This document shows, piece by piece, positions 7,328 through 55,341 of a DNA stretch of 64,000 bases. Position numbers and translations under genes: made by a program. The stretch's first letter is position 1; the number at the start of each line of letters is the position of its first letter. Under the pieces are notes generated by a model, which was not told where the DNA came from, did no database searches, and saw only the letters and a list, made by a program, of their open reading frames with translations. This stretch comes from Blepharisma stoltei ATCC 30299 (Eukaryota > Protista > Ciliophora), in NCBI GenBank assembly GCA_965603825.1, contig CBFDEM010000009.1, positions 310,001-374,000 on the forward strand. Reading direction: 5' to 3'.

Positions 7328-7978
7328 CTAGCAGCAAGGCTTGTTTATAGGCTTATTATCCATTCTTAAATTCAATTGCTGCCCTTCTGTTTTTTGATAT
7401 TGATCTGCTGCTGAGCCTTTTCTTTTCTTAACTGAGTTATTATAAATTTCTTCTAAAAGTGTTTCAAAAGCTTCTTTTATCATTGTAGAGGTGACTGCAG
7501 ATGTTTCGATGAACATTAATCCTTCAGCTTGTGCGAATTTTCTAGCTTGCTCTGTATTAACTTGCCTTACTGCAGGATTTTCAAGCGCTAAGTCGATTTT
7601 ATTTCCTACAAGCATAATCACGATGTCTGGCTCTGCTTTGGATTTCAATTCTTCAATCCAACGTTGTGCATTTCCAAAAGATCTGGCATTTGTGATATCA
7701 TAGACTAATAGTGCTCCAATAGCTCTTCTATAGTGAGCTGATACAATGGCATGATATCTTTCCTGTCCTGCAGTATCCCATATCTGTGCTTTTACTGTCC
7801 TTCCTGAGCGAAGAGTTACAACCCTTGTTGCAAATTCAACTCCAATGGTGGGATTTTGGTTTTTAGGTAAAGAATTTTTGATATATCTTGAAACAATGTT
7901 AGTTTTGCCAACGCTGGTGTCTCCTACTAAAACTATTTTATATAAGAAATCGTAGTCTTCTTCTGGAGCACTATTCAT
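7328..7978 (-). CDS. Rab11-like small GTPase
   Basis: GDTSVGKT, TIGVEFAT, KAQIWDTAGQERY, GALLVYDI, GNKID, ETSA, terminal CC. Confidence 0.92.
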   Translation of the reverse strand: MNSAPEEDYDFLYKIVLVGDTSVGKTNIVSRYIKNSLPKNQNPTIGVEFATRVVTLRSGRTVKAQIWDTAGQERYHAIVSAHYRRAIGALLVYDITNARSFGNAQRWIEELKSKAEPDIVIMLVGNKIDLALENPAVRQVNTEQARKFAQAEGLMFIETSAVTSTMIKEAFETLLEEIYNNSVKKRKGSAADQYQKTEGQQLNLRMDNKPINKPCC

Positions 7979-8974
7979 TTTATAAGTTTAATTATGAATA
8001 ACGAATTATTTTCCATTGTTTAAAGTTTAAAATTTATTCTAAAATTATATGTTAAAAAGTGGAGCTTTTTTATTTGATCATTGCATAAGTTAAAGAAGCC
8101 TTAAAGCTTATCAAGGGTTCCCAAGCCTATTTGCTTTATGTTTGTTTTTAAAATAATTAAAATCTTCAATTTGATAATTAAAAGAATGATGATAAATTGA
8201 TTTATCATAAGACTTTTGATTTTGCATGATAGATAAACTATTATTTAAAAATTTAAAGAATGGGATATATAGATTAAAAAATAAACTAAATAAAGGAAAA
8301 TGGCTTTTCTTGAGATTAGGGATAAATTATCCGGTATATCTCGATTGAAAAAGGCTTCATTTTACCAATGATTCATACTTTGATGTCTAAGAATTTGTGA
8401 TATATCTTTCCCTTTCTATTTGAAAACTTCCTAACAATCATCTGCCATTTTACTTATAAATATATATTAATTTACTTCATAGCAATCATTAATTATTACA
8501 AAGCACTTGCAATTTCTCATCATTATATAAGCGACACTCTATTCAGTTTTTTGCTTTAAATATGCATAATTTGTTAGCTGGATGAAAGCAAGATGGGTCT
8601 CAACTTGAGCATCTTAAACTGGAAAGAGGCCGAGAGTCTTAGTAATTATATACATACATTTCGGTGACAAAAAATTACTGAGCCCACTGATTTTTGTATC
8701 TAAAAAACCAGGTATTGTAATTGTAAAGTCGAAAGAGTGATACAAGATTAAAAATAAAATGAAGAAACAAAATAAATAATTGCCGAAGGCGAAAGATAAA
8801 ATGGTTGGTATTGAGAATTTTTAAAGTATACTTACCAGAGTTTAAATTCTCAACCATAAACGATTTCATAATAATTCTACTTTAAATACTATTTAATCTC
8901 AATTATTTTGTATACTTTTCAAGAATTAAAAATTATTAAATAATACTATCAAATTGATGATTTATGTTTTATTT

Positions 8975-9535
8975 ATCTTAACTCTTAAAGTTTTGGATAT
9001 TATTTTCTTTTTTCTTCAAGCTACTATAAATTCTTTTAAAAACTTATCGAAACTCCATTCAGCATAGTAGAAGTAGCAGCAGATACTTTAGCAAACAATA
9101 AATATTCAGCTCTTGTACATTCTCTAGCTTGCTCAGCACTTACTTTTGTTAATTCATGATTTTCAATAGTTAAACCCGTTTTATTCCCTAAAAGTATAAT
9201 AACGACATCTGGCTCTACCTGAAACTTTGATTTTAATATTGCAATACCTAAAAGATCACGCAATCGTAAAATCATAAACTAAAGCGCTTCAAGGCTCTTC
9301 ATAAATATGCAGGTAAATAACAAAATATTTTTATTGTCCTGCAGTATCATAAAATTGTGCATTTACCCTTTTGCCAAACTGTTTTGTTAAACACTCAATT
9401 CCAATGGTTGAATGAGTAGAGTTAGGCAAAGAGTTCCGCATATATCTTGATAATGTATTTGTTTTTCCTACCAAATAATTTCCTACTAAAACTATTTTCT
9501 ATAAAATTATAGGTTTCCTCAGAATCGGTTTCCAT
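8975..9535 (-). pseudogene. Degenerate Rab11-like paralog (pseudogene)
   Basis: Colinear with 7328-7978 (KIVLVG..VGKTN, STIGIE, DTAGQ, EPDVVIILLGNK) but has an early frameshift, TAA right after DTAGQ and a further frameshift; 3' boundary approximate. Confidence 0.85.
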
Positions 9536-13226: not shown

Positions 13227-14045
13227 TTAGTGACAGTAATACTCTGTTGTATCAGCGATATCTTTTACACGTTGAAGTTTTTCTGCAAAAGTTTTTGAGT
13301 GATGCTCAATAACAATTAATTGGTCCTTGGGTTCGAATCTTCTGCTTTTGTCGATGCTCATATGATTTTCTAATTGGGGAAGTTTTTGATTTCTAGAAAG
13401 AGTGCTTTGATTTCTCTTGTGGTTTTTATTTTTAGAATTCAGGCTTATGCTTTCTTTTATAGGAATTGTGGAATACAAAGTCATTTTTGACTTTGGGGAA
13501 ATTTCAATGATATAAGGTTTGTATAATAAATGATCATCCATATTTAAACTTCTGTTAAGGTTTCTTCTGCCTAATGAGCTTTTAATGTCCCTAAAGTGTA
13601 TTGAAGGGATTCCTTTGCCTTCAATAGTTACTGATCTATCTGTAAAGCTAGGCTGAGAATTGTTTATATTCTCTTTTGTTTTGGTGGAGGATTGAGGCTT
13701 ATCGAAAAATTTTTTATACGTTGTTTGGTTTGGGAAAAATGTAGTTTGAGGGCTTTCTCCTAAAATATCTGTTAAGAAGGAAGGAAGTATTGCTTGCTTT
13801 TTTTCGATGCTAGATTTCCTATTTGTTTTTATTTGAGACTTATCGACTTGTTGAAAAGTGAAAATTGGCTTATTCGATTTAGGCGTGCCAGTTAAATATG
13901 ATTGAATTGGGGCAGGATCTATTTTAGTCTTAGTTACGAAAGTAGTCATTGGATTTTCGAGCTGGGCAAGTTTTCCAGGAGTCACTGCAGAGGGATAGCT
14001 GATTACAGAAAAATCCCCATTTAAATGCTTTGAGTTGATCATCAT
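13227..14045 (-). CDS. Hypothetical protein
   Basis: 272-aa ORF, convergent with the previous gene (6-nt gap). Confidence 0.65.
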   Translation of the reverse strand: MMINSKHLNGDFSVISYPSAVTPGKLAQLENPMTTFVTKTKIDPAPIQSYLTGTPKSNKPIFTFQQVDKSQIKTNRKSSIEKKQAILPSFLTDILGESPQTTFFPNQTTYKKFFDKPQSSTKTKENINNSQPSFTDRSVTIEGKGIPSIHFRDIKSSLGRRNLNRSLNMDDHLLYKPYIIEISPKSKMTLYSTIPIKESISLNSKNKNHKRNQSTLSRNQKLPQLENHMSIDKSRRFEPKDQLIVIEHHSKTFAEKLQRVKDIADTTEYYCH

Positions 14046-14241
14046 TTTGCACTCGCAATATTTATTAATAAGCCATAAGATTAATAAGGTGCTTATATTT
14101 CTAGTGTCTCTTTAAATTGAGGGATGTGGCCAGGAACTAGTAACATTACTGGCTGTTCTATGATTTAACATTCTCTAGGGCAAATCAGCAGATATGCTGA
14201 CACTAGTACACAACTTAACTTTTATGTAATAAATAAATTTA

Positions 14242-15874
14242 ATGATGAATATTGATATTGAAGATCAACTTTCGGCTCTCCATTGAATTAAAGAAGAAGG
14301 AATTACTATGAATAGCAACCAACTGTACTCAAGTTCTGGAAGAAATTCACGTGAGTTTGATTCTTCATGAAGGCCGATAGACTTTTTCAAGATCTATTTT
14401 GATAATGAAGTCTTGGGAGAAATACTGACTAATTCATGAAGATATTACACTAAGAAGCTATCAGAAAAGCAGAAACAAAAAAAATTGAATAACCCTGAAA
14501 TTGATATATTGAATGAAAAGCTCTCACAGCTGATCATTGAAGAAGCAAAAGAAGATGAGAAAGAACCAAAAGCTCCTGAAATAATAAGTTCAAAGAAAAT
14601 CAAAGAAATAGATATGATTGAATTAGAAGCATACATTGGGGTGATAATTACGATGGGAATTGATAGGAAACCAAATTATCATATGCATTGGAATACTCAT
14701 GGATTATGAGAGAGTAGTCTTATATCAAAGGCCTTAGGACTTAAAAGATTTATAAATATTGGAAGCATTTTTCATCTTTCTGATCCTTTCTACTCATCAA
14801 ACTCACAAGATAAACTAGAAAAATTGAATCCACTAATGAGTCAAATCGAAGCAAAATCTCAACAATATTATCTTCTAGGGCAAAGCATAGCAATTGACGA
14901 ATCTATGATTGCGTTCAAAGGAAGAAATTCCATGAAGCAGTATCTACCAATGAAACCAACTAAATGAGGATTCAAAAATTTTGTCTTAGCAGATTCAAGC
15001 AACGGCTATGTTTATAGATTCATTATTTACCCTGGAAAAAACGAATCTTCTGAATTCTCTCCTGAAAACGTTTGCTTGAGGCTTTTGCAAGGACTAGAAA
15101 ATCAAAATTTTCATCTTTATATTGATAATTGATATAATTCAATACCATTGTTATTGAAATTGAAAGAATTTGGAATTGAATGCACTGGCACAATAAAACA
15201 AAATCGAAAATATCTTCCGAAGGACTTCAAACAGATTATTGCAGGAATAAATCAAAGCAATATTTGTTTATAAGAGCAGATCAGATACTTTTATCTTGTT
15301 GGCATGGCAAAAAGATGGTTGTTTGTGCAACTAATGCAGGAACATCAGCTGTAATCACAAAGAAAAGAGGCAAAGGTGATATCATTACAATTCCAGAAAT
15401 TATTGAACGCTATAGGAAATTTATGAGAGGTATTGATATGTTCGACCAAAATATGACTTATTATTCATACCCTCATAGAACAATCAAATGATGGAAAAAC
15501 TGTTTTTTTTATTTTCTTGAGATAGCACTGAATAATTCATATATTCTATATAAAAATCGCATGATTTCATTGAATCAAAAATTTTTATCATATGATAAAT
15601 ACCGCATTCAAATCGCAGTTTCTTTGTGCGAAAAAAGCAAAGCTAGAAGAGAAAATAAAACTGTAATAAATCAAGCAATTTCAGGAATTCATTGGATAAT
15701 AAAAATTGAAAATACAAAAGAATGCATTGGATAATAAAAATTGAAAATACAAAAGAATGCATCTTCTGCTATTATCAAAAAGGAAAGAAATCAAGGACTC
15801 CTTTTATTTGTTCAGAATGTAAGATGCACATTCATCCAAATTGCTTTTATAGTTATCATAATAATATAAAGTAA
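14242..15874 (+). pseudogene. piggyBac (PGBD4-like, DDE_Tnp_1_7) transposase disrupted by a frameshift (~15256) and a 35-bp duplication
   Basis: With UGA=Trp: PIDFFKIYF, IDESMIAFKGR, QYLPMKPTKWGFK, YIDNWYNS, GTIKQNR, YRKFMRGIDMFDQ, KWWK..F, C-terminal CxxC..CxxC..CF..YH. First frame stops at 15271-15273, second at 15732-15734. Confidence 0.93.
15690..15759 (+). repeat. Perfect 35-bp tandem duplication
   Basis: CATTGGATAATAAAAATTGAAAATACAAAAGAATG x2, followed by CAT. Confidence 0.97.
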
Positions 15875-16224
15875 TTATAGCTAAATTATAGAGTGTTAAT
15901 ATGGTGCAACATAAGCCAGACATTCCAAAAAGACTACGCAGCCTCTGCACATCTCACTGACGCGTTGTCGGCGCTTATTACTCAGATCCTGCGCCTTTTC
16001 TACTAGGGATCATTTCCTAAGGTATGCTTAGTGGACAAATCCTAAGCCTTCCAATTAACCAAGGATATATCAGGAGGTGCGCAACTCTCCTCGTTGCTTT
16101 CCTGATAGCTAGAAGATTCTCTGAAAACCGATCTTCATAATAAAAATTTGCAAGATATATAGAATTTCGCTATCCTAATTTCCTCCATTATACAATATTT
16201 ATTAACAATTTATAATTAATTTCT

Positions 16225-17214
16225 TTATTGATGCAACTTAATCCCGAATTGTACAAATCTGCAATCTCCATGAATCATAGAGTATTTTTCAAAGACTTCA
16301 AAGACATCCAACTCAAATGCACAGATACTTCGAATTATATCGGATTGATCAATATGCATAGGAGTTCCTGACGTGAAGAGGATTGTGTTTCCTTCTCGGT
16401 ATTCAACTTGATCACCTTGCAGGCAGCTTGATAATCCAAAAACTGACACTTTTGGAACTAAAAGCTGCAGCTGCACACTTAACTGTTGTTCTGATCTCAG
16501 AATGAAGAGAAACGACCGAGTGCTTGTTCTATACAAGAACTCGAGTAGTAGTTTTGTACCTTGAATATTTAAAATATAAATATAATATAATGATGTAAAG
16601 CACGGTAAACTGTGTATAGATTTCAATGGCTTTTCCAGATCTCTCAAATTAAACTGTATTTGTGCATGAGGCAGCACAATTACGTCACTTGAGCCTGATA
16701 CTTCAGCTACGTGATGGCATTCCATATAATGTGTGAATATCGCGTTAGCATATTCGCTATAGAATCCACATCTATTTTCCCCAGTTTCATATGAACAATA
16801 ATGAATTCTGTTAACTCCGCAGGTCTTTTTGTGTCTAGAAAGATCAGACATCCTGACTTGTTGTCCACATAGCTCACATAAAAGTGAGATCATCCCTAAG
16901 ATTTCTTCAATTTGGTGATTACGCACCATATCTCGTTTACAATAAAAGCAGGTGTTTTTCTTTCTCATACAGTTTCCACAAATTTTTACTTCATGATGAG
17001 TTGTGCAGGAGAACACATAATCACTGAAAGGATCAGCACAATAGTTGCAGACCAAGTAGTTGATACATTCAGGGCGAAGAGAAAAAGATTGAGGGCTTAG
17101 GGATGAGGGGGTGCTTGAATGAGATGCTGAGCTTTGTTTAGATTGAGAAGAGTAAGGCATTGGAGTTCCTATTCGAGGATGGGCATTTGGTATTGGCGTG
17201 CTACAGTTCCACAT
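16225..17214 (-). CDS. RING-variant plus TRAF/SIAH-type zinc finger protein (SINA-like E3 ligase)
   Basis: CNYC...C..HH...CGNC.....CFYC then RNHQIE, CELC...HKKTC, C......C...HYMECH. Confidence 0.7.
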   Translation of the reverse strand: MWNCSTPIPNAHPRIGTPMPYSSQSKQSSASHSSTPSSLSPQSFSLRPECINYLVCNYCADPFSDYVFSCTTHHEVKICGNCMRKKNTCFYCKRDMVRNHQIEEILGMISLLCELCGQQVRMSDLSRHKKTCGVNRIHYCSYETGENRCGFYSEYANAIFTHYMECHHVAEVSGSSDVIVLPHAQIQFNLRDLEKPLKSIHSLPCFTSLYYIYILNIQGTKLLLEFLYRTSTRSFLFILRSEQQLSVQLQLLVPKVSVFGLSSCLQGDQVEYREGNTILFTSGTPMHIDQSDIIRSICAFELDVFEVFEKYSMIHGDCRFVQFGIKLHQ

Positions 17215-53896: not shown

Positions 53897-54019
53897 AGTA
53901 ATGCTATTTTTCTAAAAAATTTTGCCAAATTAAATAATTTAATATAAAAATTATAAATTTATGACCTAATAAAAACTGTCATAGCAAATAATGATGCGTT
54001 AAATTATAAAGCAAATAAG

Positions 54020-54439
54020 ATGGTTATTTTTAGTATTCCAAAATATATCTTCAGAGTGATTCATATATTTGCAGGATGCTTTATTCTTGGAAATGCATTT
54101 GCAGATCTCATATGAGACGAAAGAGACCAAGACAGCTATACCATTATGAAGCTCCTCTGCGTAATTTTTTTATTAATTTCTGGAGCTGCTAATTTCATGC
54201 CAAACGAAATTTTTGATGTTGATAAAAATATTCTTTGGGTGAAACTTATCCTCGTAAAAATTGTTCTTTGGCTATTTTATTTGCCTTACTTCTGGGCTTG
54301 CTTAATTGGTTTATTCTCTCCTTCAGCGATTATTGAAGTTATTTTAGCTGTTATAATCATTCTAATAAGCAGTTTTGCAAAAACAGTGAGAGAAGGGGAT
54401 GTCAAGATCCCTGAAGAGATAGCAAATTTAAGGGATTAA
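54020..54439 (+). CDS. Small 4-TM protein, copy 1
   Basis: Paralog of 54910-55341; TGA at 54113 aligns to TGG; 3-codon deletion. Confidence 0.75.
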
Positions 54440-54465
54440 TGTATTCAATTAGCCATACTTTAATT

Positions 54466-54852
54466 ATTTACCATTAGCGAGAATTCTTAATAATGGGGGG
54501 ATATTAAAATTTTATCCATAACTTTGGTGCTGGGACCTTTCATCAAATCTGCCATTTATAGTCTTTTATAGGGACTGATTTTTCGTATGGGATTTTCCCT
54601 AAAATATCTTTATTAGATTGTCTAAAATTTGAATGTGACGTTGTGCATCTTGACCTTGTAGTCAAACTTTGGGCTGAAAATACTCTTATGAGATGAGGAT
54701 TAAGAAATCCGCTGATTTCCCATTTCAAATTAGAAGTTTGGGGTCTACGATCTTTAGTATCTCGGATAGTTGAATACAGAAATGCCTCGTTTTTTACAGT
54801 TTCATATACAAACTCTTTTTTATCCTTTGTAGGTGCCAGCTTAAACAATGAG
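54466..54852 (-). pseudogene. 5'-truncated, frameshifted copy of gene 55366-56022
   Basis: Near-identical to the 3' half; 1-nt deletion after WQI and a further deletion near 54500. Confidence 0.85.
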
Positions 54853-54909
54853 ACATCCCATACAAACTGTCATGGCGAAATAATGATGATTTAAATTATA
54901 AAACAAATA

Positions 54910-55341
54910 ATGATGCTGATTTTTAGTATTCCAAAATACATCTTCAGAATGATTCATGTATTTGCAGGATGCTTTATTCTTGGAAATGCATTTGCAGATC
55001 TCATATGGGATGAAAGAGACGAAGACAGCTATGCCCTTATAAAGTTCTTGTGCTTAATCTTTTTATTTATTTCTGGGGTTGTTAATCTTATACTTTTAAA
55101 GCCAAGCAAAATTTTTGATGAAAATACAAATAAGCTTTGGGTGAGACTTATCTATGCAAAACTTGTTCTTTGGCTGTTTTATTTGCCTTACTTCTTCGCA
55201 TGCTTAATTGATTTCTCATATCCTTCAGCGATTATTGAAGTTATTTTAGCTGTTATAATCATTCTAATAAGCAGTTTTGCAAAAACAGTGAGAGATGGGA
55301 ATGCCAAGACCCCTGAAGAGATAGCAAAATTAAGAGATTAA
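54910..55341 (+). CDS. Small 4-TM protein, copy 2
   Basis: 143-aa hydrophobic ORF. Confidence 0.8.
   Translation: MMLIFSIPKYIFRMIHVFAGCFILGNAFADLIWDERDEDSYALIKFLCLIFLFISGVVNLILLKPSKIFDENTNKLWVRLIYAKLVLWLFYLPYFFACLIDFSYPSAIIEVILAVIIILISSFAKTVRDGNAKTPEEIAKLRD

Follow-up and report, generated by a model that had tools for sequence, protein, structure and literature searches.

The piggyBac-like elements (PBLEs) carry terminal repeats of 5-19 bp, under a definition that takes in inactive copies. In the T. ni piggyBac, bp 17-33 at the left end are the binding site of a Cys-rich-domain dimer (PMC7351741). For the Tetrahymena germline, piggyBac elements have been described as full-length consensus sequences (PMC5182062), and Paramecium has no recognisable IESs derived from piggyBac (PMC8354472). 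In Blepharisma, eight MAC piggyBac homologues have been reported that are 'no longer harbored by transposons', lack flanking terminal repeats and are all under purifying selection (PMC9942806). The published tree places BPgmL1-7 in the ciliate clade, and the study itself mentions possible pseudogenisation of the short BPgmLs.

Here we describe a locus in the somatic genome of Blepharisma stoltei which is very probably a dead member of a small family of cut-and-paste piggyBac transposons in this genus, with elements of about 1.7 kb that carry one gene of ~531 aa. The family is real and apparently undescribed. Its targeting of TTAA, its dispersal, its decay and its retention in the somatic DNA of strain ATCC 30299 are set out below.

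Sequences and samples

The stretch of DNA analysed, termed the window, comprises 64,000 nucleotides (C9:310001-374000) of the somatic (MAC) assembly of B. stoltei ATCC 30299, and all 64 contigs of this assembly (41,464,486 bases) were searched. In the assembly TGA encodes Trp and TAA and TAG are stops; translation was with code 4. Pfam and database searches were run on stop-free frame pieces, and the read-through protein carries an X at the 1-nt break. Four other samples (X6, X8, X12 and X14) were compared as contigs, which show presence rather than absence, hide rare variants and collapse paralogues. X6 has zero differences from the window flanks. X12 bears the same species label, with flanks that differ by 2-3%, and is probably strain HT-IV, a second strain, whilst X14 is another species. 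X8 is guessed to be RNA from its coverage pattern.

The ends of the element

The features of the locus are listed in Table 1. The two TTAA sites lie 1727 nt apart. The initial annotation had placed TTAA-bounded ends 73 nt upstream and 21 nt downstream of the gene, and both spacings stand: the left TTAA is 73 nt from the ATG at 14242 (the ATG common to all copies is at 14245), and the stop codon at 15872-15874 is 21 nt from the right TTAA. The 7/9 inverted match of the ends and the palindrome that it had noted are likewise present in the sequence. Each end also matches 5/6 positions of the 6-nt terminal motif of PMC5381638. A 7/9 match is weak when taken alone, as 0.5% of the TTAA pairs in the window reach it and about 0.2 such pairs are expected within 400 nt of the gene. 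Since the terminal match is too weak to serve as proof, the ends were demonstrated by means of other copies instead. Of all window positions, about 0.2% begin a palindrome of this kind; to judge from T. ni piggyBac, the one in the left end is the probable binding site of a Cys-rich-domain dimer.

Table 1. Features of the piggyBac locus, in window coordinates
Feature	Position	Strand	Remarks
13-nt direct repeat, left	14056..14068		bounds the 2137-nt segment that varies between strains; probably a target-site duplication left by an older insertion
Host segment, left part	14069..14164		no second copy in the somatic assembly
Left TTAA target-site duplication	14165..14168	+	homology to C57, C58 and C1 copies begins here; flanks unrelated
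Left terminal repeat	14169..14177	+	short, imperfect; first base C
Palindrome, 16-bp	14185..14200		bp 17-32 of left end; perfect in C58 and C1 copies
Transposase frame 1	14245..15273	+	342 aa, code 4; D218 (14896), D294 (15124); early TAA 15271-15273
1-nt frameshift	15258..15259	+	one base fewer than every other copy
Transposase frame 2	15261..15722	+	contains catalytic D398 (15435)
35-nt tandem duplication, second frameshift	15685..15754	+	private to the window copy
C-terminal Cys-rich domain and stop codon	15728..15874	+	CxxC-CxxCxxxxH-CxxxYH type; motif per PMC9942806 supplement
Right terminal repeat	15887..15895	-	same as C57 copy up to TTAA; flank differs
Right TTAA target-site duplication	15896..15899	+	shared with C57 copy
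Host segment, right part	15900..16192		unique
13-nt direct repeat, right	16193..16205		pairs with 14056..14068

Dispersed copies in the somatic genome

A DNA search of the assembly gave four other copies, on contigs C57, C58, C23 and C1, at 89-98% identity. In three of them (C57, C58 and C1, the last reading TTAG for TTAA) the similarity begins precisely at the left TTAA, that of the C57 copy halts exactly at the right TTAA, and the flanks are unrelated among all copies. Copies with shared termini and different flanks, which the initial annotation had put forward for a search, thus exist, and its proposal that this was a once-mobile piggyBac is borne out. The condition under which it was to be refuted, a lack of other copies with these ends, does not hold. 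A pattern search of the assembly returned four left ends and two right ends, with zero control hits; MITE derivatives sought in the somatic assembly were not found, these four left and two right ends being the only ones.

The C58 copy interrupts a reverse-transcriptase (LINE) frame in its 3' part, and where the LINE is uninterrupted, in its paralogues on C54, C23 and C25, the insertion point is a single TTAA (3/3). The frame seems to continue across the C58 site, a reading that was rejected because the right flank comes from a different local gene family; the C58 copy thus lost its right end, together with the remainder of the LINE, by deletion. The C57 and C58 copies share deletions of 1, 14 and 204 nt yet occupy different sites; a defective copy thus itself moved, from which we infer a transposase acting in trans.

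The C1 and C23 copies are unlikely to be two halves of one copy, since they diverge from the majority state to different degrees (6.8% versus 1.1%). The C1 copy (L072/L006) ends and the C23 copy (L004) begins at the same TA-rich point, equivalent to window positions 14505-14507, possibly by IES-like trimming. Inside the C23 copy, at L004:2411-2863, lies a SINE-like retroposon of 453 nt whose tail is (ATT)n and whose target duplications measure 15-20 nt; it has five other somatic matches (also L041-L045), four of them at 91-94% identity. In X6, four contigs have loose left ends, as against three other somatic left ends. Three tandem stretches of 145-170 nt on C46 (L071; 160.2k, 162.4k and 164.6k) resemble the 5' part of the transposase at 69-70% identity and sit inside a tandem gene array. 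Older, decayed piggyBac relics occur at C23:644k (L024), C62:765k (L025) and C62:4.6k (L026); L024 is nearer to BPgm (46% over 130 aa) than to the window family and may be a BPgm-type pseudogene.

A transposase gene in three frames

The element had been described as carrying a complete transposase, which proves not to be so: a 1-nt loss and a 35-nt duplication split the gene into three frames. Because of the loss at 15258/9, frame 1 ends after 342 aa, and the duplication, whose two units differ at one base and which shows 8-nt microhomology, moved the Cys-rich domain into the third frame. Read through both breaks, the gene has 531 codons and no further stop. The three catalytic Asp motifs and the Cys-rich tail of the earlier description are all found, spread over the three frames, with Asp codons at 14896 (IDESM), 15124 (IDNWY) and 15435 (GIDMFDQ). 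PF13843 is matched above its cut-off by two separate pieces, whilst the match to zf-Tnp_2 (E 6e-4) falls below the cut-off. A tiny intron bridging the frameshifts was ruled out, as both shifts need a length of 2 mod 3 and introns of 15/16 nt are therefore out of phase with either. The term 'full-length' thus applies to the element in that both ends are present, but not to its broken frame: the window copy is a pseudogene. An intact open reading frame, as expected of an autonomous piggyBac, is found in none of the somatic copies.

The number of TGA-Trp codons in the window copy, previously given as at least seven, is exactly seven. Such codons are present in all copies and relatives roughly 85-90% identical occur in the second species, X14, in agreement with the proposal that the element evolved under the host code.

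Were both breaks errors of assembly, the element would be intact and potentially active, and the in-frame state does prevail at both places in all other copies and in all sample contigs. However, the 1-nt loss is accompanied by a substitution and lies outside any homopolymer, and the one-base difference between the duplicated units, together with the 8-nt microhomology at their flanks, points to genuine change. Moreover, the sample contigs collapse paralogues, and the published annotation likewise has two adjacent genes here. An intact element hidden by misassembly is very improbable.

Decay and selection

Every somatic copy is broken by frameshifts, stops or truncations (5/5). Pairwise dN/dS among the copies ranges from 0.38 to 1.07. 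Changes private to the C23, C57, C58 and C1 copies amount to 15 synonymous and 55 non-synonymous (dN/dS 0.9-1.2), and these four copies evolve neutrally, the pattern that an absence of selection would give. In the window lineage there are 10 synonymous and 10 non-synonymous changes and a dN/dS of 0.24-0.33, an excess of synonymous change (P 0.002-0.017, the range being set by the transition correction). Our reading is that this lineage descends from a master copy that was active for longer, and the excess also fits a brief period of use by the host. In X8, some of the pieces at low depth are specific to the window copy and others to the C57 type. Low-depth contigs that resemble RNA, a status which is itself a guess, match the window copy at 14346-15072 with 0-2 differences, and this copy appears to be weakly transcribed.

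The published BPgm-like genes

The six main contigs with PF13843 matches map 6/6 onto contigs of Table S7 in PMC9942806, with gene names assigned by contig order (names sorted as text) and not by coordinates. C44 corresponds to Contig_49 (BPgm, Contig_49.g1063), C5 to Contig_13 (two BPgmL genes), C9 to Contig_17, where the adjacent g391 and g392 are the window element, C23 to Contig_3 (Contig_3.g998), C57 to Contig_60 (Contig_60.g827) and C58 to Contig_61 (Contig_61.g932). From the lengths of the contigs, the positions of gene IDs are recovered within 2% (about 3127 for the window versus MAC3091/3092). The top protein match is from B. stoltei, and the B. stoltei database protein CAG9334207.1 is the C58 copy. 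On this mapping, the window transposon most likely accounts for five of the seven published BPgm-like genes, which would be pieces of four of its dead copies and not domesticated genes.

The published view would make the window element a domesticated, catalytically incomplete BPgm-like helper gene or gene pair, without ends and under purifying selection. In line with PMC9942806, the window lineage has a dN/dS of about 0.3 and RNA-like contigs cover part of the gene. However, a domesticated gene should be single-copy, at an orthologous position and without ends, whereas here five copies are dispersed, transposon ends are present and a second strain lacks the window locus. Nor is this the picture of purifying selection on an intact gene, given two frameshifts, neutral sister copies and a low dN/dS in the window lineage only. 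The published dN/dS was measured against BPgm at a saturated dS of 6-108, and pseudogenisation of the short BPgmLs is raised by that study itself. The published view of this element is largely refuted and we regard it as very improbable.

At BPgm and the two C5 genes, a search for a TTAA-C end pair gave none. The second Contig_13 BPgm-like gene (L019/L022, C5:509k) is split over two frames in the raw translation, through a tiny intron or a frameshift, and is without the region of the first catalytic motif. The published inventory is revised accordingly: of the eight 'domesticated' somatic piggyBac genes, probably only three are truly so, which makes for a weaker parallel with the Pgm-plus-helpers system of Paramecium. 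The claim that all somatic transposases lack ends is also weakened.

The locus and its variation between strains

The window piggyBac is nested in a unique host segment of ~393 nt, between the 3' end of one neighbouring gene and the 5' region of the other (13230-14111 and 16228-17214, both on the minus strand). The host segment gave no homologue when searched at the DNA, protein and Pfam levels; it is probably an older retroposed insertion.

In X6, both element junctions are at flank depth (71 and 83) and free of differences, which upholds the earlier description of the element as retained in somatic-type DNA. Depth reaches 270-470 over the left two-thirds of the element. A joint that skips the element is absent from the X6 contigs, and removal from somatic DNA, as would mark an IES, was not seen in contigs, which hide rare variants. 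The 14168-15900 joint that precise excision at TTAA would leave is absent from the contigs of four runs, and a species-B joint of 14241-16209, resting on 24 nt, was disregarded.

In X12, a single 14-kb contig (depth 105) connects 14054 to 16192. It lacks 2137 nt, which comprise the transposon with 110 and 292 nt of flank and are bounded by the 13-nt direct repeat. The locus thus varies between strains, though not as a clean TTAA empty site. Of the empty sites suggested as a check, the LINE paralogues show a single TTAA for the C58 site; at the window locus, the second strain has this larger gap.

The 2137-nt segment might instead be an IES, excised in the second strain and retained in ATCC 30299, with the piggyBac as its cargo. 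The second-strain joint is exact and lies between TA-containing direct repeats, and Blepharisma IESs do carry terminal direct repeats (PMC9942856). However, the second strain shows zero depth for the host segment as against about 20% for piggyBac pieces, in contigs that show presence and not absence, and the 13-nt repeat, together with a TTA-like tail, is in keeping with retroposition of the kind seen in the (ATT)n-tailed family and its 15-20-nt duplications. We consider excision as an IES unlikely. A deletion allele in the lineage of the second strain is a third possibility for the gap.

X12 contains pieces of the family only at depths of 6-24, with loose ends at both termini and other flanks, which suggests copies that are germline-limited or partly eliminated and possibly intact. 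The pieces examined carry neither lesion of the window copy and may be a mosaic of copies. One X12 contig departs from the element at the centre of the palindrome (window 14194), and an X12 right end at window 15897 runs TT-GC, not TTAA. In X6, C-rich sequence follows the TAA at window 15874. Elsewhere in the window, long direct repeats ~0.9 kb and ~1.6 kb apart, at 53985-54970 and 7764-9490, are likely local tandem duplications, and an ARAGORN tRNA call at 1492-1576 on the minus strand has an odd four-base anticodon (gaaa) and is possibly spurious.

Relationship to the excisase

Amino-acid identity of the read-through protein is 34% with BPgm, 25% with the C5 genes and 36-39% with the environmental proteins P0155, P0152 and P0002. 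In a tree of 24 rows, BPgm and the two C5 genes form a clade of their own (100/100) with the window element outside it, as sister to the environmental, TTAA-bounded P0155 (96/95). Together, the element, P0155, the domesticated trio and P0129 are split from 18 other piggyBac proteins (94/89), and a quick tree of 48 rows recovers the same split (98 SH-aLRT). The named ones among these 18 proteins are all animal. The tree has long branches and is without Paramecium, Tetrahymena or Condylostoma sequences, and without Pgm or Tpb. This placement suggests that the window element is closely related to the excisase group but lies outside it. The kinship with the excisase that had been proposed is therefore supported by the identity to BPgm and the grouping with the Blepharisma domesticated genes. 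The further proposal of an intermediate between transposon, IES and domesticated gene is not, as the element branches outside the BPgm/BPgmL clade and represents a related mobile family, of which it is a dead copy and no half-domesticated gene.

The AT-rich environmental piggyBacs L062, L063 and L064 have uninterrupted frames and branch beside the Blepharisma group. L062 and L063 (P0152/P0155) are one environmental element at two sites, with right flanks that differ in the two contigs.

A possible history of the family

If the family behaved as T. ni piggyBac does, its transposase would have bound the outer 16 bp of each end, and the Cys-rich domains the left-end palindrome at bp 17-32; excision and re-insertion at TTAA would have followed hairpin chemistry. 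The C57/C58 lineage, a non-autonomous derivative, would have been mobilised in trans. The window copy presumably inserted into the older ~393-nt insertion between two genes. This would have taken place in the germline, because a divergence of 1-7% is too old for laboratory culture. The copy would then have escaped developmental genome editing and lost its frame twice, its retention perhaps being due to the lack of coding harm from a copy between genes. Against this history stand the absence of a clean single-TTAA empty allele at the window locus and the short, imperfect terminal repeats.

It is possible, if doubtful, that an intact member of the family survives in the germline, and that some somatic copies have been trimmed as TA-bounded IESs, with the conversion of piggyBac to IES in progress. 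An intact germline copy is suggested by the low-depth X12 pieces that have both ends and are free of the window frameshifts, and IES-type trimming by the TA-rich site at which the C1 copy ends and the C23 copy begins. If so, the family would include a living TTAA transposase, specific for its ends, that belongs to the lineage from which the ciliate excisases arose. The family supplies BPgm with natural ends and a close mobile relative, so that an end-specific TTAA transposase can be compared with a sequence-relaxed excisase. It also presents piggyBac insertions that escape piggyBac-based editing in one strain and are sub-stoichiometric in another. Its value lies in the corrected BPgmL inventory and in the hint that a relative of the excisase may persist intact in the germline.

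Comparison with known systems

The window element and its copies have the features by which PBLEs are recognised, namely TTAA duplication, terminal repeats that start with C, a PF13843 DDD transposase with a Cys-rich domain, and dispersed copies. With T. ni piggyBac and other PBLEs (PMC5381638, PMC7351741) the element shares the TTAA duplication, ends beginning with C, a single DDD transposase with a C-terminal Cys-rich domain, and asymmetric ends with a left-end palindrome at bp 17-32/33. It differs in being very compact (1727 nt, with a 21-nt 3' UTR), in a terminal match of only 7/9, in its TGA-Trp code and broken frame, and in being without a clear internal repeat at the right end.

BPgm and the two Contig_13 BPgmLs belong to the same superfamily, have the same type of Cys-rich domain and occupy neighbouring branches. 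Unlike the window element, BPgm is a single-copy, intact gene of 518 aa, and all three genes are without transposon ends.

The closest relative found is the environmental P0152/P0155 (L062, L063), at 36-38% identity and likewise with TTAA ends. L062 also has a perfect palindrome, of another sequence, at bp 17-32 and an equally short 3' UTR. In contrast to the window element, L062 and L063 have an uninterrupted frame, the standard code and an unrelated end sequence.

The Tetrahymena germline piggyBacs (PMC5182062) and the TPB1/TPB6-dependent IESs (PMC5766162) are likewise cases of TTAA-bounded, piggyBac-type ends in a ciliate, and the right end of the window element matches 8/9 positions of the Tetrahymena consensus TTAACHCTW. 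The Tetrahymena elements, however, are germline-limited and excised, whereas the window copy stays in the soma.
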